64,000 bases of DNA from sequence record NC_070958.1. The stretch is one strand, 5' to 3'. Positions 7,418-11,633 of the stretch are shown piece by piece (position 1 is the stretch's first letter; each line of letters begins with the position of its first letter). The notes under the pieces are model-generated. The model worked only from the letters and a program-made list of their open reading frames with translations, made no database searches and was not told where the DNA came from. Position numbers and translations under genes: made by a program.

Positions 7418-7488
7418 TTCATTTCCTTAAAAGTTAGTAAGTTGCAATATATTAACCTTTGGGTAATTTTTAATAGGACATAATAAAA

Positions 7489-7520
7489 GCCTCTACTCTC
7501 CGGTTAGGGAGAGTAGAGGC
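7489..7520 (-). terminator. Intrinsic terminator closing the RNA island
   Basis: Minus strand GCCUCUACUCUC-loop-GAGAGUAGAGGC then UUUUAUU. Confidence 0.85.
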
Positions 7521-8385
7521 GATTACTGACGTGTACTACCTTCCCATTACTCACTCACTTCCCGATTATAGATCCGGCCAAAGACCTTATCGGGATCAAG
7601 AGAGTAATAGGCTGATAGCAAGTACGTGAGGGGTTCCAAACGGAAACCGTCACTTCTACCAACTTCCATGCAGAGCAAGCATGGCGGACCGTTCGACTTC
7701 GTTATTAAGGTGCTCTCTGAAGTATAGTCCCCTCAGCTACCCGCCGCGGCCTCAGCCGGGGGTTTTTGCTAAGGGCATCAGCCTTATATAACGTCGTCAC
7801 TGTACTGGCACTAACGAATAGAACCATCGGCGCACGGTTAGGGTACCTACGTGACTCGCGTCCGTTGGGACGGGAGATGGAACTTCCTTATAAAGGAAGA
7901 AAGGGTTTTGAACCCAGGATGCCCTGATCCATTGTAATAGACCATCGCTTCACTCCTTTCATTAGAACCTAGCATGCCTTTTCGGCCAAAATGGTTCATC
8001 AGAGTTACTGTATATGGGAACTGTTCCGTGGGTTCAAAAAGGTATCCCGGACAATGACTAAGTAACCACACTCCACCCCATCAGCGCAAGCTAATGTAAG
8101 GTACGTCACTATCCAGGGAATAGGGCCGAGAACACGCTGTCTTTTAGAAGGATCGCTTTTGAGTGGTAAGTTCACTCATCTACTGCCAACCGACTTCCCC
8201 GTAGGGCTTCGTCTTAACTAACGTGTCTCGGTGATTCGTACTAGTATCTATCTGGTATGTTTGACACCTTGGGTATCATGGCAAACAGCCTAGGATTAAC
8301 CTATGTACAAATATAGTTGAGAGTGTAAGTAAGAAACACGGTAACAGGAGGCGGAGAAACCGTATGAATACACTTACACCCTCAA
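7521..8385 (-). ncRNA. Candidate large structured ncRNA (~850 nt), family not identified
   Basis: No credible ORF; many helices including a 10-bp perfect long-range pair (7906-7915/8030-8039) and a UACG tetraloop; downstream of tRNAs, ends at terminator. Confidence 0.65.
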
Positions 8386-8387
8386 AG

Positions 8388-8465
8388 GGTGAGAACTCCT
8401 GGAATCGAACCAGGGCAATCCCGCGATGGGTTGTGCGGGCGACTTTCCTTTCGTCTTCAGTTCTC
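8388..8465 (-). ncRNA. tRNA-like element with aberrant anticodon arm (pseudo-tRNA)
   Basis: Acceptor GAGAACU/AGUUCUC, T-arm CCUGG-UUCGAUU-CCAGG, D-arm GAC-GAAAGGAAA-GUC, stem CCCGC/GCGGG with 10-nt loop ACAACCCAUC; ends ACC(C). Confidence 0.7.
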
Positions 8466-8467
8466 GT

Positions 8468-8731
8468 TTACAGTTCGATGTCGAAAGACATCACTTCTTG
8501 TTCTTCAGTCAACCTGGCGTTGAGATCGTCAAAGCCACCAACGTGTTCATCGTCCAGGAAGATCTGGGGAACTGTTGTGACTTGTCGACCACACAATTGA
8601 CTGAGTTGTGTTGTGTCGATTCCGGAAGACTTGATATCGACATATTCGAACGCGATACCTTTATCTTCGAGAAGCTCTTTTGCCTTTACACAGTAAGGGC
8701 AATTATCCTTTCCATAAACTTTGGCTTTCAT
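8468..8731 (-). CDS. grx: Glutaredoxin
   Basis: CPYC active site, TVPQIF, HVGGFDDL. Confidence 0.95.
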   Translation of the reverse strand: MKAKVYGKDNCPYCVKAKELLEDKGIAFEYVDIKSSGIDTTQLSQLCGRQVTTVPQIFLDDEHVGGFDDLNARLTEEQEVMSFDIEL

Positions 8732-8754: not shown

Positions 8755-8830
8755 TGGCAGGCAAGCAAGGATTCGAACCTTGGACATCTGGTTTTGGAGA
8801 CCAGCGCTCTACCAACTGAGCTACTCACCT
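8755..8830 (-). tRNA. trnW: tRNA-Trp(CCA)
   Basis: AGGTGAGTAGCTCAGTTGGTAGAGCGCTGGTCTCCAAAACCAG...GTTCGAATC...GCCA; full cloverleaf with encoded CCA. Confidence 0.97.
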
Positions 8831-8850
8831 GTAATACGAATTCACATTAC

Positions 8851-8991
8851 TACACACTCGCCGTTCTTCCTAGTTTCCGTTCCGAACGTTCCACGGTTCA
8901 CCGTCACCATATACTTTATCCATTCGGACGCCATCTGTGGCTATCAAGTACTTAGGTCCATATTGGTTATGTCTGTTGACACCCGTGTGTA
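8851..8991 (-). ncRNA. Candidate structured RNA in the tRNA-Asp/tRNA-Trp spacer
   Basis: Closing helix UACACAC/GUGUGUA enclosing hairpins UGUC/GACA, GCCA/UGGC, ACGG/CCGU, CGUU/AACG. Confidence 0.45.
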
Positions 8992-9017
8992 AACCAGATT
9001 AATCTGGGGTGAAAATA

Positions 9018-9094
9018 TGGCAGGGATAACGGGGCTCGAACCCGCGACCTCCGGCGTGACAGGCCGGCACTCTAACCATCTGAGCTACATCCCT
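9018..9094 (-). tRNA. trnD: tRNA-Asp(GTC)
   Basis: AGGGATGTAGCTCAGATGGTTAGAGTGCCGGCCTGTCACGCCGG...GTTCGAGCC...GCCA. Confidence 0.97.
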
Positions 9095-9098
9095 AAAT

Positions 9099-9174
9099 TG
9101 GCGGTTCCTGCTGGACTTGAACCAGCGACATATGCATTAACAGTGCACCGTTCTACCTACTGAACTAAGGAACC
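9099..9174 (-). tRNA. trnN: tRNA-Asn(GTT)
   Basis: GGTTCCTTAGTTCAGTAGGTAGAACGGTGCACTGTTAATGCAT...GTTCAAGTC...GCCA. Confidence 0.97.
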
Positions 9175-9234
9175 TGAATATGGAGCCGACTAACGGAATC
9201 GAACCGATGACCTACTGATTACAAGTCAGTTGCT

Positions 9235-9333
9235 GGTGCCGGTCCTTCTACGTTGACCGCTCAAAAGAACGCTAGAGAAAAGGGCATCCCTTACTTCACT
9301 GCCAAGGCTACAACGCCAAACAGTATCCTGAAG
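9235..9333 (+). repeat. Exact 99-bp copy of terL 2011-2109
   Basis: ggtgccggtcc...cagtatcctgaag identical at both loci. Confidence 0.97.
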
Positions 9334-9508: not shown

Positions 9509-9709
9509 TCAACCAGCATTAAAAGAACCTAAGATCAAACCACGGACATTACCTATGGTTCGACCAATCAAAGTGACTTCGATGCGATCAATAGGCAAAT
9601 AACCATTCGCCAGATCAATCGCTTCCGATAAGTCGACAGCCGCGATAACCACTGCGTCGTACTCGTCATAGTCCCAATCATCGGTTCTTTCAACTTTATA
9701 GATGTTCAT
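9509..9709 (-). CDS. Small phage protein (66 aa), paralog of 34849-35112
   Basis: GGAG upstream of ATG 9709; MNIYKVERTDDWDYDEYDAVVIAA...GLILGSFNAG. Confidence 0.8.
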   Translation of the reverse strand: MNIYKVERTDDWDYDEYDAVVIAAVDLSEAIDLANGYLPIDRIEVTLIGRTIGNVRGLILGSFNAG

Positions 9710-9779
9710 ATCGACAGTCTCCGTTGTTAGCGATTTGGCTTTCCAACGTACTACCAGCAATATCGAACATCTTGCATAA

Positions 9780-9924
9780 CAATGAGTTTCCCAGAGTTTG
9801 ACATTTTCTATCCATCATGGTCCCCGAGACCGGATTTCGGGACGCGCCGGTGCTACTTCGATTCTAGACCGAAGTGTAATGGTGTTTTTTACGATTCGGG
9901 GGTTTCTGTCAAACCACTTCATTG
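9780..9924 (-). ncRNA. Structured RNA motif, copy B of a tandem pair
   Basis: CAAUGAAGUGG...CUCUGGGAAACUCAUUG; same helices and loops as copy A with compensatory changes. Confidence 0.8.
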
Positions 9925-9933
9925 TTTATTTAT

Positions 9934-10072
9934 CAATGAGTTTCCCAGGGTGTAGAGTATTTTATCCGCTGCGGGCAGGCCAGGTGGGTCTTCGGGACGC
10001 ACCCACAGTTGGCTCAAGAGAGCTGCCTTGTGTTTTGGCGACTGGCCTTTATTTCTCTACACTACTTCATTG
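9934..10072 (-). ncRNA. Structured RNA motif, copy A of a tandem pair
   Basis: CAAUGAAGUAG...CCCUGGGAAACUCAUUG; conserved loops AAAACAC and GCGUCCCGAA. Confidence 0.8.
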
Positions 10073-10074
10073 AA

Positions 10075-10350
10075 AGGTGTTAGCTGTTTCTCTCTTGGAC
10101 CCCAGCATCGTCACCAGGATAAAACCTTTGTGTGACAACACTCAATTAACACCTATATCATTGTGACACCTTCTCGGTGTGATACATAGTCGATCACCGC
10201 ATTGGTTAGATCCCTGATGGACGACTGGACGCTGCGTATAGCAGTGTTTGTCTCCTAGGTGGGTATCGCCAGCACCGTGTCGGCTATAGGATGTGATCAC
10301 ACGAGGAAACCAGAGGGATGTCCAACCCTTTTCAGTTACATGTGATCACG
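10075..10350 (-). ncRNA. Candidate structured RNA region immediately 5' of the tandem motif
   Basis: AGGUGUUA/UAACACCU, GUCAC/GUGAC, ACACC-GAGAA-GGUGU, CUGC/GCAG; two GUGAUCAC palindromes; no credible ORF. Confidence 0.5.
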
Positions 10351-10809
10351 AAAGCTGTTGTTAACAAAGTATAATAACTTGTTGTTACTAAATACTTTTC
10401 AATTGGCTCTCTTTGAAAGCTAATAGAAAAGAGGTCTTCACAAACCGTATGGAAGACCTTTGAAAAATGTAAAGGATTAACAATGAAAAATAAACCAACC
10501 ATACACGAAAGCCAACACCAATGACCTTCTATATAAACTCTCTTTGAAGAGCATATATAGAAAGGGGGTAGGAAGACTACCCCGCGGGTAAAAGCAATAA
10601 CCCAAGAACGTGCAGATATTGAAAGCGGGAGCTTTCTTGATAATGACTCTTGGGTGAATCAGTATTAAGAAAGCAAGGGATAAAGCTGCGCACAAAATCC
10701 CTTTGCTTGTATTACGTAGGAGTTTATTCAATGGCTTCGTTTTGACCACTGTCGCGTTCAGTAATCAAAAGGAAGCATTTTTGTACATATAATAACAGAC
10801 ACCCATAAC

Positions 10810-10925: not shown

Positions 10926-11633
10926 ATGACTTTGGCTCGTGCTTTTATCGAACGTATTATCGTTCAGATCATTCTCGCCTTCATGGCGGCAAACTGGCGG
11001 AAGATGAACGAACACATCGTCATCGCCCGCGCTTCTGGTATTTCCCAAGGGATCAAAACCAAGTACCTGGGCGACTGGGGTCCGATCAGTGTCTGGCTGT
11101 CTCTCGATGGCCGGGCGTGGTCCATTTGCATCGGTACCGCGACCAACTTTATTACTTCCCGACTCACCAACGGTAACTGGGCGTTCAACCGCTCGGTAGT
11201 GGAGAACCTCTACAACCAATTTGAAGAGCGGCGTACCGAACCTCAGTTCGCTGACCTCGATACACTCCGACTCTCTATCGATTCGTTGCTTCTGGAACTT
11301 CCGATCGTTGCCAAGCTGGGTGATCGTATCATGGGTAATACAATCCGGGTTCTTCCCCAGCTCAACATGTCTGGTGAGTACGCCAGGGAATTGTCGAAGT
11401 TGATCTCTGTGGTATTCAATGGTAAAGTCGGTCTCCGCGGCAAACCCTCTGGGGCAATGAGCCTGGGTATCAGCCGTCTCGAACTGGGTGACGGCGTAGT
11501 CACCGGCTCGATGGTCCACCACTTCCGTGACTACTCCATGCCCTGGGAAGGGAATGCAGTGAACCGTGCTGAGGCACGTGACGCTCTGGTCGAGGCGTTT
11601 GTATACGCTATGACCAAACCTGAACTGAAGTAA
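10926..11633 (+). CDS. Hypothetical protein
   Basis: 235-aa ORF, AAGGA upstream, terminator downstream. Confidence 0.8.
   Translation: MTLARAFIERIIVQIILAFMAANWRKMNEHIVIARASGISQGIKTKYLGDWGPISVWLSLDGRAWSICIGTATNFITSRLTNGNWAFNRSVVENLYNQFEERRTEPQFADLDTLRLSIDSLLLELPIVAKLGDRIMGNTIRVLPQLNMSGEYARELSKLISVVFNGKVGLRGKPSGAMSLGISRLELGDGVVTGSMVHHFRDYSMPWEGNAVNRAEARDALVEAFVYAMTKPELK

Follow-up and report, generated by a model that had tools for sequence, protein, structure and literature searches.

Does the 1.2-kb unannotated stretch between two divergent genes of a jumbo phage encode a structured RNA, and if so, of which kind? This question is raised by positions 9780-10072 of a 64,000-nt stretch of sequence record NC_070958.1, referred to here as the window, which was identified by blastn as bases 1-64000 of Aeromonas phage D6 (MN131137.2, Ludhianavirus, 259,831 bp). 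Two adjoining units, A and B, are located there between D6_0009 (minus strand) and the divergent D6_0010 (10926-11633, plus strand). The original prediction, made from the letters of the window, described them as a tandem pair of an unrecognised RNA domain and offered three guesses at its role: a tandem aptamer controlling the tRNA operon, a processing ribozyme, or the repeat module of a larger RNA. The units belong to a real, conserved and strand-specific family of structured RNAs of jumbo phages, which was duplicated in the D6 lineage. The nucleus-like compartment of phiKZ-type jumbo phages and their use in therapy are under intensive study, and to our knowledge almost nothing is known about their non-coding RNAs. 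The fold described here has multiple helices, always occurs in the tRNA operon and matches no Rfam family; as the family is small and its hosts are tractable, it is directly testable.

Fold of the two units

Unit A comprises 139 nt (10072-9934) and unit B 145 nt (9924-9780), both on the minus strand, as are all positions given for their parts, and they are separated by the 9-nt A/U-rich linker AUAAAUAAA (9933-9925). When the units were folded separately by minimum free energy, an identical set of helices, P1 to P7, was obtained for both. The strand, boundaries and linker given in the original prediction agree with the sequence, and the shared architecture is borne out by both folds. P1 and P2 form a long stem that leads into a multi-helix junction, with P3 and, in some members, a small P7, and P3 closes a four-way junction of P4, P5 and P6. 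In unit A, the helices are located at 10072-10064/9941-9934 (P1), 10062-10055/9957-9950 (P2) and 10047-10042/9983-9978 (P3), and the hairpins at 10039-10025 (P4, loop AAAACACAA), 10023-10012 (P5), 10006-9984 (P6) and 9974-9966 (P7). The equivalent positions in unit B are 9924-9916/9787-9780 (P1), 9914-9907/9803-9796 (P2), 9901-9896/9827-9822 (P3), 9892-9876 (P4, loop AAAACACCA), 9875-9855 (P5), 9851-9829 (P6) and 9820-9812 (P7). P2 has 8 bp and P6 has 5-6 bp. The predicted set of helices held, except that P1, CAAUGA-A-GU paired with ACUCAUUG, is slightly longer than first written, with 8 bp and a bulged A.

The unpaired parts of the fold include the loop of P6, L6, and the 3' junction J2/1. 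L6 reads GCGUCCCGAA in both units (9991..10000 in unit A, 9836..9845 in unit B), with CCCG at 9996-9993 and 9841-9838. J2/1 has 8 nt of the form YCUGGGAA and reads CCUGGGAA in unit A (9942..9949) and UCUGGGAA in unit B (9788..9795). In unit A, CCCG and the GGG at 9946-9944 are the proposed 5' and 3' strands of a pseudoknot. The invariant blocks GCGUCCCGAA and CUGGGAAACUCAUUG each occur twice in the window, in units A and B only.

Since the folding z-scores are modest (-2.5 and -1.2), thermodynamics alone is insufficient to establish this fold, and the case is made by the comparison of the two units. In their structural alignment, 97.4% of the cells are paired, and 16 of the 38 pairs are changed on both sides with pairing kept. 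When the 3' partners were slid by 1-3 columns, only 0-2 double-change pairs were obtained, and none of 500 shuffles attained the observed value. P1 is the sole helix without variation between the units, as had been noted before. A covariance model built from unit A alone (R1), which scores unit A itself at 181.8 bits, recovered unit B at 64.9 bits (E 6e-14), although the E-values of such short-calibrated models, here and below, are rough.

Close relatives of D6 add little to this comparison. A blastn search of the region against 50,697 phage records, which reported one place per genome, matched only four near-identical Ludhianavirus genomes, with D9, D3 and LAh10 at least 99% identical to D6 across the region. 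Among these four genomes, six single-nucleotide polymorphisms fall within the units, and they are uninformative with the exception of two: a C>U change that preserves a G-U pair, and a U>C change within GCGUCCCGAA in LAh10.

Homologues in jumbo phages and the family alignment

The exact D6-invariant pattern GCGTCCCGAA..CTGGGAAAC gave a single chance match in IMG/VR, located inside a coding sequence, and none of the eight IMG/VR loci found with the pattern AAACAC..GTCCCGAA..TGGGAAA was confirmed by the covariance model. Relatives were reached by synteny. A tblastn search with the 66-aa D6_0009 revealed homologues in many phiKZ-like jumbo phages, and the fetched loci share the operon order of D6_0009 homologue, tRNAs, glutaredoxin, long gap and DUF7484 gene. 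With filters off, R1 detected one full-length copy each in Kosakonia phage Kc263 (32.7 bits) and Pantoea phage Survivor (30.1 bits), located in the long gap past the glutaredoxin gene and not upstream of the D6_0009 homologue. The Kc263 gap was then used for a blastn search, which led to Serratia phages Yubaba and Sureiya, Klebsiella phage N1M2, Edwardsiella phage pEt-SU, Shewanella phage SXP01 and Erwinia phage AH04. Each of these contains a full-length single copy according to R1 (21.6-30.5 bits); Pseudomonas phage OBP matches the Kc263 gap in other parts only. The named relatives with the domain thus amount to eight genomes and, as Yubaba and Sureiya share one sequence, seven distinct sequences, each in single copy. 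Two more members, found with R1 among loci fetched via the DUF7484 protein, are located on uncultivated jumbo-phage contigs from IMG/VR (L030 and L032). The search of phages by covariance model that had been suggested along with the prediction was therefore productive, with eight genomes and two contigs. The homology is reciprocal, because a model built from six relatives only (R2) found both D6 units in a 76-kb search, unit A at 21.8 bits (E 0.002) and unit B at 20.1 bits (E 0.006).

The family appears to be confined to this clade. Covariance-model searches did not find the motif in OBP, AhC3_1, Caitlin, Proteus phage 7 or SPLA5c. In D6, where the model scans spanned bases 1-114 kb, it was found neither in the gap at 7670-8467, the counterpart of the relatives' locus, nor in bases 64-114 kb. 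Searches by blastn with the L030 and L032 variants gave no further named phages, and 23 of 24 metagenome loci fetched via the DUF7484 protein were without the motif, the sole match (L037) being a copy of L030. One sequence pattern was searched in one genome per bacterial and archaeal species (185,579 genomes), and all 19 loci that it returned were rejected by a union model (R3), so that no copy is known outside this phage clade. As a side observation, three near-identical metagenome contigs (L034 3147-3223, L035 3397-3473 and L038 3540-3616), whose DUF7484 protein is 66-70% identical to that of D6, all give the same weak and partial match to the model (12.4 bits, E 0.66), in which the P3-P4-P5-P6 junction is covered and the CCCGAA loop is missing. 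The match could be due to chance or point to a degenerate relative.

All copies are located on the tRNA strand of the syntenic operon consisting of the D6_0009 homologue, tRNAs, glutaredoxin and the DUF7484 gene. The hosts of the phages with this fold cover Aeromonas, Kosakonia, Pantoea, Serratia, Klebsiella, Edwardsiella, Shewanella and Erwinia. The D6 lineage differs from its relatives in that it carries a diverged tandem pair at another site, the opposite end of the same operon.

The family alignment comprises 11 sequences from about ten phage lineages and extends the helix-by-helix covariation that was predicted from the two D6 units. In the model-based alignment, pairing holds in 95% of the cells, and double changes occur at 28 of 33 pairs, compared to 3-10 for slid partners, and again none of 500 shuffles attained the observed value. 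A hand-segmented alignment was checked base by base, and 26 of the 29 columns of P1, P2, P3, P4 and P6 proved to be compensated, with few non-canonical cells. It contains 13 G-U cells, which would become A-C on the opposite strand and so identify the tRNA strand as the transcribed one. The P5 hairpin varies in length, and P7 is present in both D6 units, AH04 and L030 and absent from the Kc263 group. The near-invariant unpaired elements are L6 (NNNNN-CCCGAA), J2/1 (YGGG(A/U)A), an A-rich J3/2 and L4, the loop of P4, which reads AAGCUNA in the family and AAAACACMA in D6; the L6 core CCCGAA and the GGG of J2/1 are invariant in all 11 members. The domain is not coding, since stops occur in every sense-strand frame of all members, and in all six frames of SXP01 and L032, and the open reading frames (ORFs) overlapping the domain have no Pfam match. 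For these reasons, we are highly confident that the domain is a real conserved structured RNA.

The covariation also bears on the possibility that the units act as DNA, such as iterons or a recombination or packaging site, or are a decaying duplication without function. A direct repeat of about 145 bp within a 1.2-kb divergent intergenic region would be in line with such an element. However, the substitutions between the copies overwhelmingly preserve pairing on one strand, with G-U pairs among them, and a single copy is conserved across genera at a different locus. The strand-specific, pair-preserving substitutions essentially exclude a DNA-level or functionless repeat, and we regard this explanation as extremely unlikely.

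The pseudoknot between L6 and J2/1 is a different matter. Complementarity of CCCG in L6 to YGGG in J2/1, predicted as UCCCG/UGGGA, is present in every member, whereas support by covariation is missing. Since these bases are invariant in the two D6 units, the units alone cannot test the pairing. Across the 11 sequences, the three C-G pairs never vary, and at the fourth, L030 has G-C where the other ten sequences have G-U, a U>C change that gives a stronger pairing. The flanking pair is U-A in D6, A-U in AH04 and A.A elsewhere. The resulting covariation is not significant, as shuffles score alike. The pseudoknot is sterically plausible and, judging from the sequences, likely but unproven as a clamp of the fold; the conservation of CCCG and YGGG is also consistent with the same contact being made between molecules or between units.

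The family is new with respect to Rfam 15, and searches of the literature turned up no account of it. The claim that the RNA was unrecognised had come with a request for an Rfam check, which gave no match even at relaxed thresholds. With the 4227 covariance models of Rfam 15 at the gathering threshold, the whole window yielded four tRNA hits only, none of them in the units, and at E<=10 the region 9600-10400 showed two chance matches at other positions or on the other strand. Nothing was found over the motif in the Survivor homologue region at E<=5, and loci L014-L017 gave tRNAs only. A catalogue of 8,495 'DNAVirus_X' structured RNA candidates of 29-151 nt, obtained from IMG/VR (PMC10690425), may contain the family. 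These candidates, which came from a comparative genomic analysis of intergenic regions in phages, resemble the family in kind, and the three family members in IMG/VR correspond to the minimum used in that study, the text of which mentions neither a jumbo-phage motif nor a tandem motif.

The long non-coding stretch of the relatives and the D6 operon

In the relatives, the gap bearing the motif is 0.7-1.2 kb long, contains no credible ORF and in several phages directly follows tRNA-Met. It consists of several blocks, each conserved in a differing subset of phages. The motif itself lies downstream of the tRNAs and glutaredoxin and more than 600 nt from the next ORF. Applied to nine relatives, RNAalifold predicted P1 to be stacked on an outer helix, GGGY/RCCC, which covaries (U-A to C-G, G-C to A-U) and encloses an additional hairpin. 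A strongly conserved hairpin, CCAAGAG...GUGAACGG...GUAAGUAG...CUCUUGG, was predicted ahead of this structure. Of the three guesses in the original prediction, the repeat module of a larger RNA fits best, as the motif is one module within a long conserved non-coding stretch in all relatives.

Several further observations concern this stretch. In L015 (5030-5420) and the homologous gaps of L016, L018-L022, L030 and L032, the motif lies inside a larger conserved non-coding RNA. A 60-nt hairpin ahead of the outer helix is 90% identical between Kc263 and AH04 and has a loop-E-like internal loop (GAA/AGUA). The 5' block of the gap is also found in OBP, whose gap is without the motif.

A type-I hammerhead, unannotated in all records, was found in seven phages, namely Survivor, AH04, pEt-SU, SXP01, Yubaba, N1M2 and OBP (L016 6499-6577 in Survivor, L022 2030-2065 plus stem III in AH04, with equivalents in L017-L021). 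It follows the motif at a distance of about 285 nt, and the DUF7484 structural gene comes another 100-450 nt further downstream. All seven have an intact core (CUGAYGA, CGAAAC and GUC), and stem I covaries (CACC/GGUG, CUAU/AUAG, ACAU/AUGU, CAG/CUG). Covariation also links the 5' flank to loop II (CAUCG/CGAUG, UUCG/CGAA, UGUCG/CGACA, CCCG/CGGG), indicating a pseudoknot in the hammerhead. The score of only 15.5 bits in Rfam is due to long insertions. These sequences are most simply read as follows: in the relatives, a long non-coding RNA that has the motif as one domain would be freed by tRNA processing and by cleavage at the hammerhead, and the conserved hammerhead thus offers a concrete processing model for RNA release. 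In D6, where both the hammerhead and the outer helix are missing, the units are isolated at the opposite end of the operon, and this speaks for a domain that folds and functions on its own.

With a hammerhead nearby, it could be asked whether the domain is itself a catalytic RNA that processes the polycistronic transcript of the tRNA operon at the unit boundaries. Its compact, probably pseudoknotted fold with invariant unpaired nucleotides, the identity of P1 and the linker at both unit boundaries in D6, and the absence from D6 of the hammerhead that its relatives carry would all be in agreement with this. Nevertheless, no known core, no match to an Rfam ribozyme family and no conserved cleavage dinucleotide mark the domain as catalytic. 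The units are not hammerheads either, a class defined by a CUGANGA...GAAA core, three helices and an NUH cleavage site, as they have no such core and no Rfam match, and the hammerhead of the relatives is a separate downstream element. Because seven relatives carry this canonical element with an intact core about 285 nt away, a second cleaving element would be unnecessary there. The second guess, a processing ribozyme, consequently found no support and is considered highly unlikely.

In D6, the first ORF downstream of the units is D6_0009 (66 aa, phrog_5444, 9509..9709, minus), 70 nt past unit B. It is followed on the minus strand by a 60-aa ORF, the genes for tRNA-Asn, tRNA-Asp and tRNA-Trp (8755..9174), a glutaredoxin-like gene (8468-8731), about 1 kb of non-coding DNA and the DUF7484 'virion structural' gene. 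The tRNAs and the glutaredoxin-like gene represent the conserved operon context of the family. No Pfam domains were found in the 66-aa and 60-aa ORFs, and no nuclease or toxin gene adjoins the units.

This arrangement raises the possibility of tandem riboswitch aptamers, in which a junction or pseudoknot pocket would bind a small molecule or ion and set the read-through or translation of D6_0009 and the tRNA genes. The junctions and loops are highly conserved with variable stems, 70 nt separate unit B from the start codon of D6_0009, which follows it on the same strand, and tandem aptamers are an established arrangement, the glycine riboswitch being a known example. However, no terminator-like site was found 3' of unit B on the minus strand, and the interval up to the start codon contains no expression platform that resembles a terminator or would sequester the ribosome-binding site. 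The single copy of the relatives is located after the tRNAs and glutaredoxin, far from the next ORF and with the hammerhead in between. The D6_0009 homologues of AhC3_1, Kc263, Survivor and OBP have no motif upstream, which argues against gene-specific cis-regulation, and the gene association is therefore not conserved. Metabolite riboswitches are normally abundant in bacterial genomes, and no copy was found in those scanned with the one pattern; no Rfam riboswitch family matches. A generic riboswitch class was rejected on the missing terminator-like site and the unconserved gene association, and the guess of a tandem aptamer controlling the tRNA operon is disfavoured by the position of the relatives' single copy and by the D6_0009 homologues without motif. 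Overall, riboswitch aptamers are an unlikely explanation.

Regulatory signals upstream of the units were not apparent. A sigma-70 promoter scan gave nothing convincing, a k-mer enrichment analysis of intergenic DNA, made to find a phage promoter motif upstream of unit A, yielded nothing but terminator-like GGGAGAGGG stems, and the folding z-score of the 300 nt upstream of unit A (-1.5) is not informative. The 8-mers GGAGAGGG and CCCTCTCC, which extend to GGGAGAGGG and CCCTCTCCC, occur nine times in about 6.7 kb of intergenic-like DNA of the window and not at all in long ORFs. A family of terminators specific to the phage probably uses them as stems. The palindrome GTGATCACA occurs twice (10292-10300 and 10339-10347), 47 bp apart and at about 220 nt upstream of unit A; as RNA, the pair would form an 11-bp hairpin, and as DNA it resembles paired operator sites.

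Further observations were made in the tRNA operon of D6 itself. A second non-coding stretch of about 1 kb (7480-8467, minus) occupies the position of the motif RNA in the relatives, without detectable similarity to them. It ends in a strong intrinsic terminator (7523-7487, GCCUCUACUCUCC...GGAGAGUAGAGGC UUUUAUUA), and the annotated 40-aa D6_0006 inside it is doubtful. Directly past the glutaredoxin stop codon, where relatives have tRNA-Met, lies a tRNA-like element (8387-8465, minus) with a 7-bp acceptor stem (GAGAACU/AGUUCUC), a perfect T arm (CCUGG-UUCGAUU-CCAGG) and an aberrant D and anticodon region. It is called neither by ARAGORN nor by Rfam and recalls the tRNA-like rnaC of T4. The fourth Rfam tRNA (9184-9257, minus; 30.3 bits, just over the threshold) is not called by ARAGORN and overlaps the 3' end of the annotated coding sequence D6_0008; in D9, a 142-nt 'tRNA-OTHER' is annotated nearby. 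Among the four 99%-identical Ludhianavirus genomes, the segment 9226-9450, which covers D6_0008 with the region upstream of it, has undergone replacement or deletion, and 102 nt are inserted between tRNA-Asn and tRNA-Asp in D3 and D9 (position 9098). This is a local mosaic hotspot within the tRNA operon.

Possible role and comparison with known RNAs

On balance, we lean towards a structural RNA module that is non-coding, acts in trans, shares a transcript with the phage tRNAs and offers L4, L6 and J2/1 as a surface for binding or assembly. Units A and B would be diverged paralogues of one autonomously folding domain specific to the phiKZ-like jumbo phage clade, transcribed from the minus strand within the tRNA and glutaredoxin operon. 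Rather than regulating an adjacent gene in cis, this module may bind a yet-unnamed protein, RNA or small ligand, or may associate with itself. In the relatives, it would be part of a long non-coding RNA released by tRNA-Met processing at the 5' side and hammerhead self-cleavage at the 3' side, and in the D6 lineage, it would have been duplicated in tandem at the 5' end of the same operon.

A number of points weigh against this reading. Transcription, processing to a stable species, the pseudoknot and action in trans are inferred, and RNA expression, ends and stability rest on inference for all these phages. The family is small, with 11 distinct sequences, several of them closely related, so the covariation counts are inflated by shared ancestry, and the pseudoknot, as described above, is without significant covariation. 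Near-invariant junction nucleotides and a tandem layout are equally typical of riboswitch aptamers, and unit B is only 70 nt ahead of a start codon. Finally, the identity of P1 and J2/1 in the D6 units, which have otherwise diverged at 16 base pairs, is left unaccounted for. Possible reasons are sequence-specific recognition, gene conversion at the boundaries, or selection for a strand swap of P1. In such a swapped form, the 3' strand of A could pair with the 5' strand of B as a hairpin over the linker, while the 5' strand of A and the 3' strand of B could enclose both units.

A related proposal is that the RNA serves as a decoy or sponge: by imitating an RNA of the host or the phage, it would titrate an RNA-binding protein, for instance a nuclease, an effector of defence or an enzyme that processes or modifies tRNA, with two copies in D6 for dosage. 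The constant location in the tRNA operon of virulent jumbo phages, the duplication in one lineage only and the precedent of phage RNA repeats acting as antitoxin mimics (PMC3475682) speak for it. Against it, the units show no resemblance to tRNA, no nuclease or toxin gene is adjacent, and no host counterpart was found in the 185,579 species genomes, which were searched with one sequence pattern only. A tRNA or tRNA-like identity of the units was rejected, as ARAGORN and the Rfam tRNA model call nothing in 9780-10072 and no T-loop sequence (GTTCRANYC in the T arm of a cloverleaf) is present. A decoy would moreover be a sub-case of the structural module and not a true alternative to it, and in this specific form it is decidedly unlikely.

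Among known RNAs of phages, the type III toxin-antitoxin systems were considered and rejected, since ToxI-like RNAs consist of near-identical tandem repeats of about 34-45 nt placed directly ahead of a gene for an endoribonuclease toxin, whereas the units have 139 and 145 nt and are diverged, and the downstream ORFs have no Pfam domain. T4 rnaC and rnaD (species 1 and 2; 139 and 119 nt, in tandem after tRNA-Arg) resemble the D6 units as two adjoining RNAs of about 120-140 nt in a tRNA cluster and on the tRNA strand. In contrast to the units, rnaC has a tRNA-like T arm, GGGUUCGAAUCCC, and acceptor-like ends, and rnaC and rnaD are not mutual paralogues. Homology was rejected because R3 with filters off missed both in T4 69.5-74.5 kb, with the best match of 12.1 bits (E 0.51) located elsewhere.

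Tandem riboswitches such as the glycine riboswitch share with the units the arrangement of two homologous aptamer-like domains in series. The fold recalls aptamers of the SAM-I type in its four-way junction, its proposed pseudoknot from a hairpin loop to a junction, and its conserved junctions with variable stems. The differences from riboswitch aptamers are those given above: no family match, no expression platform, single copies far from ORFs in the relatives and no bacterial copies found. Orphan structured RNAs have repeatedly proved to be riboswitches, ribozymes or self-assembling architectures.

GOLLD and ROOL (RF01998 / RF03087) are large non-coding RNAs that form multimers as seen by cryo-electron microscopy (bioRxiv 10.1101/2024.12.08.627333). 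Membership of the units in these families was rejected, as there is no Rfam match in the window or in the relatives' loci. These families are characterised by a size of 500-800 nt and assembly into homo-oligomeric cages, and neither in sequence nor in structure do they match the D6 domain, which is 140 nt long and belongs to jumbo phages of Gammaproteobacteria. The likeness is that of orphan, intricately folded RNAs of phages and prophages that are typically found by tRNA genes and are not cis-regulatory, and their size is similar to that of the 0.7-1.2 kb multi-module non-coding stretch of the relatives. As a tentative possibility, phiKZ-like jumbo phages could possess a new class of large processed non-coding RNAs, analogous to GOLLD and ROOL, with this domain as its signature module. 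In the relatives, tRNA processing at one end and the hammerhead at the other would set the RNA free, and its partner would be a specific molecule of the cell or the phage, or another copy of itself. The D6 tandem, whose identical P1 helices could swap strands, would then be a covalent dimer of a unit that, in the other phages, would form dimers in trans.

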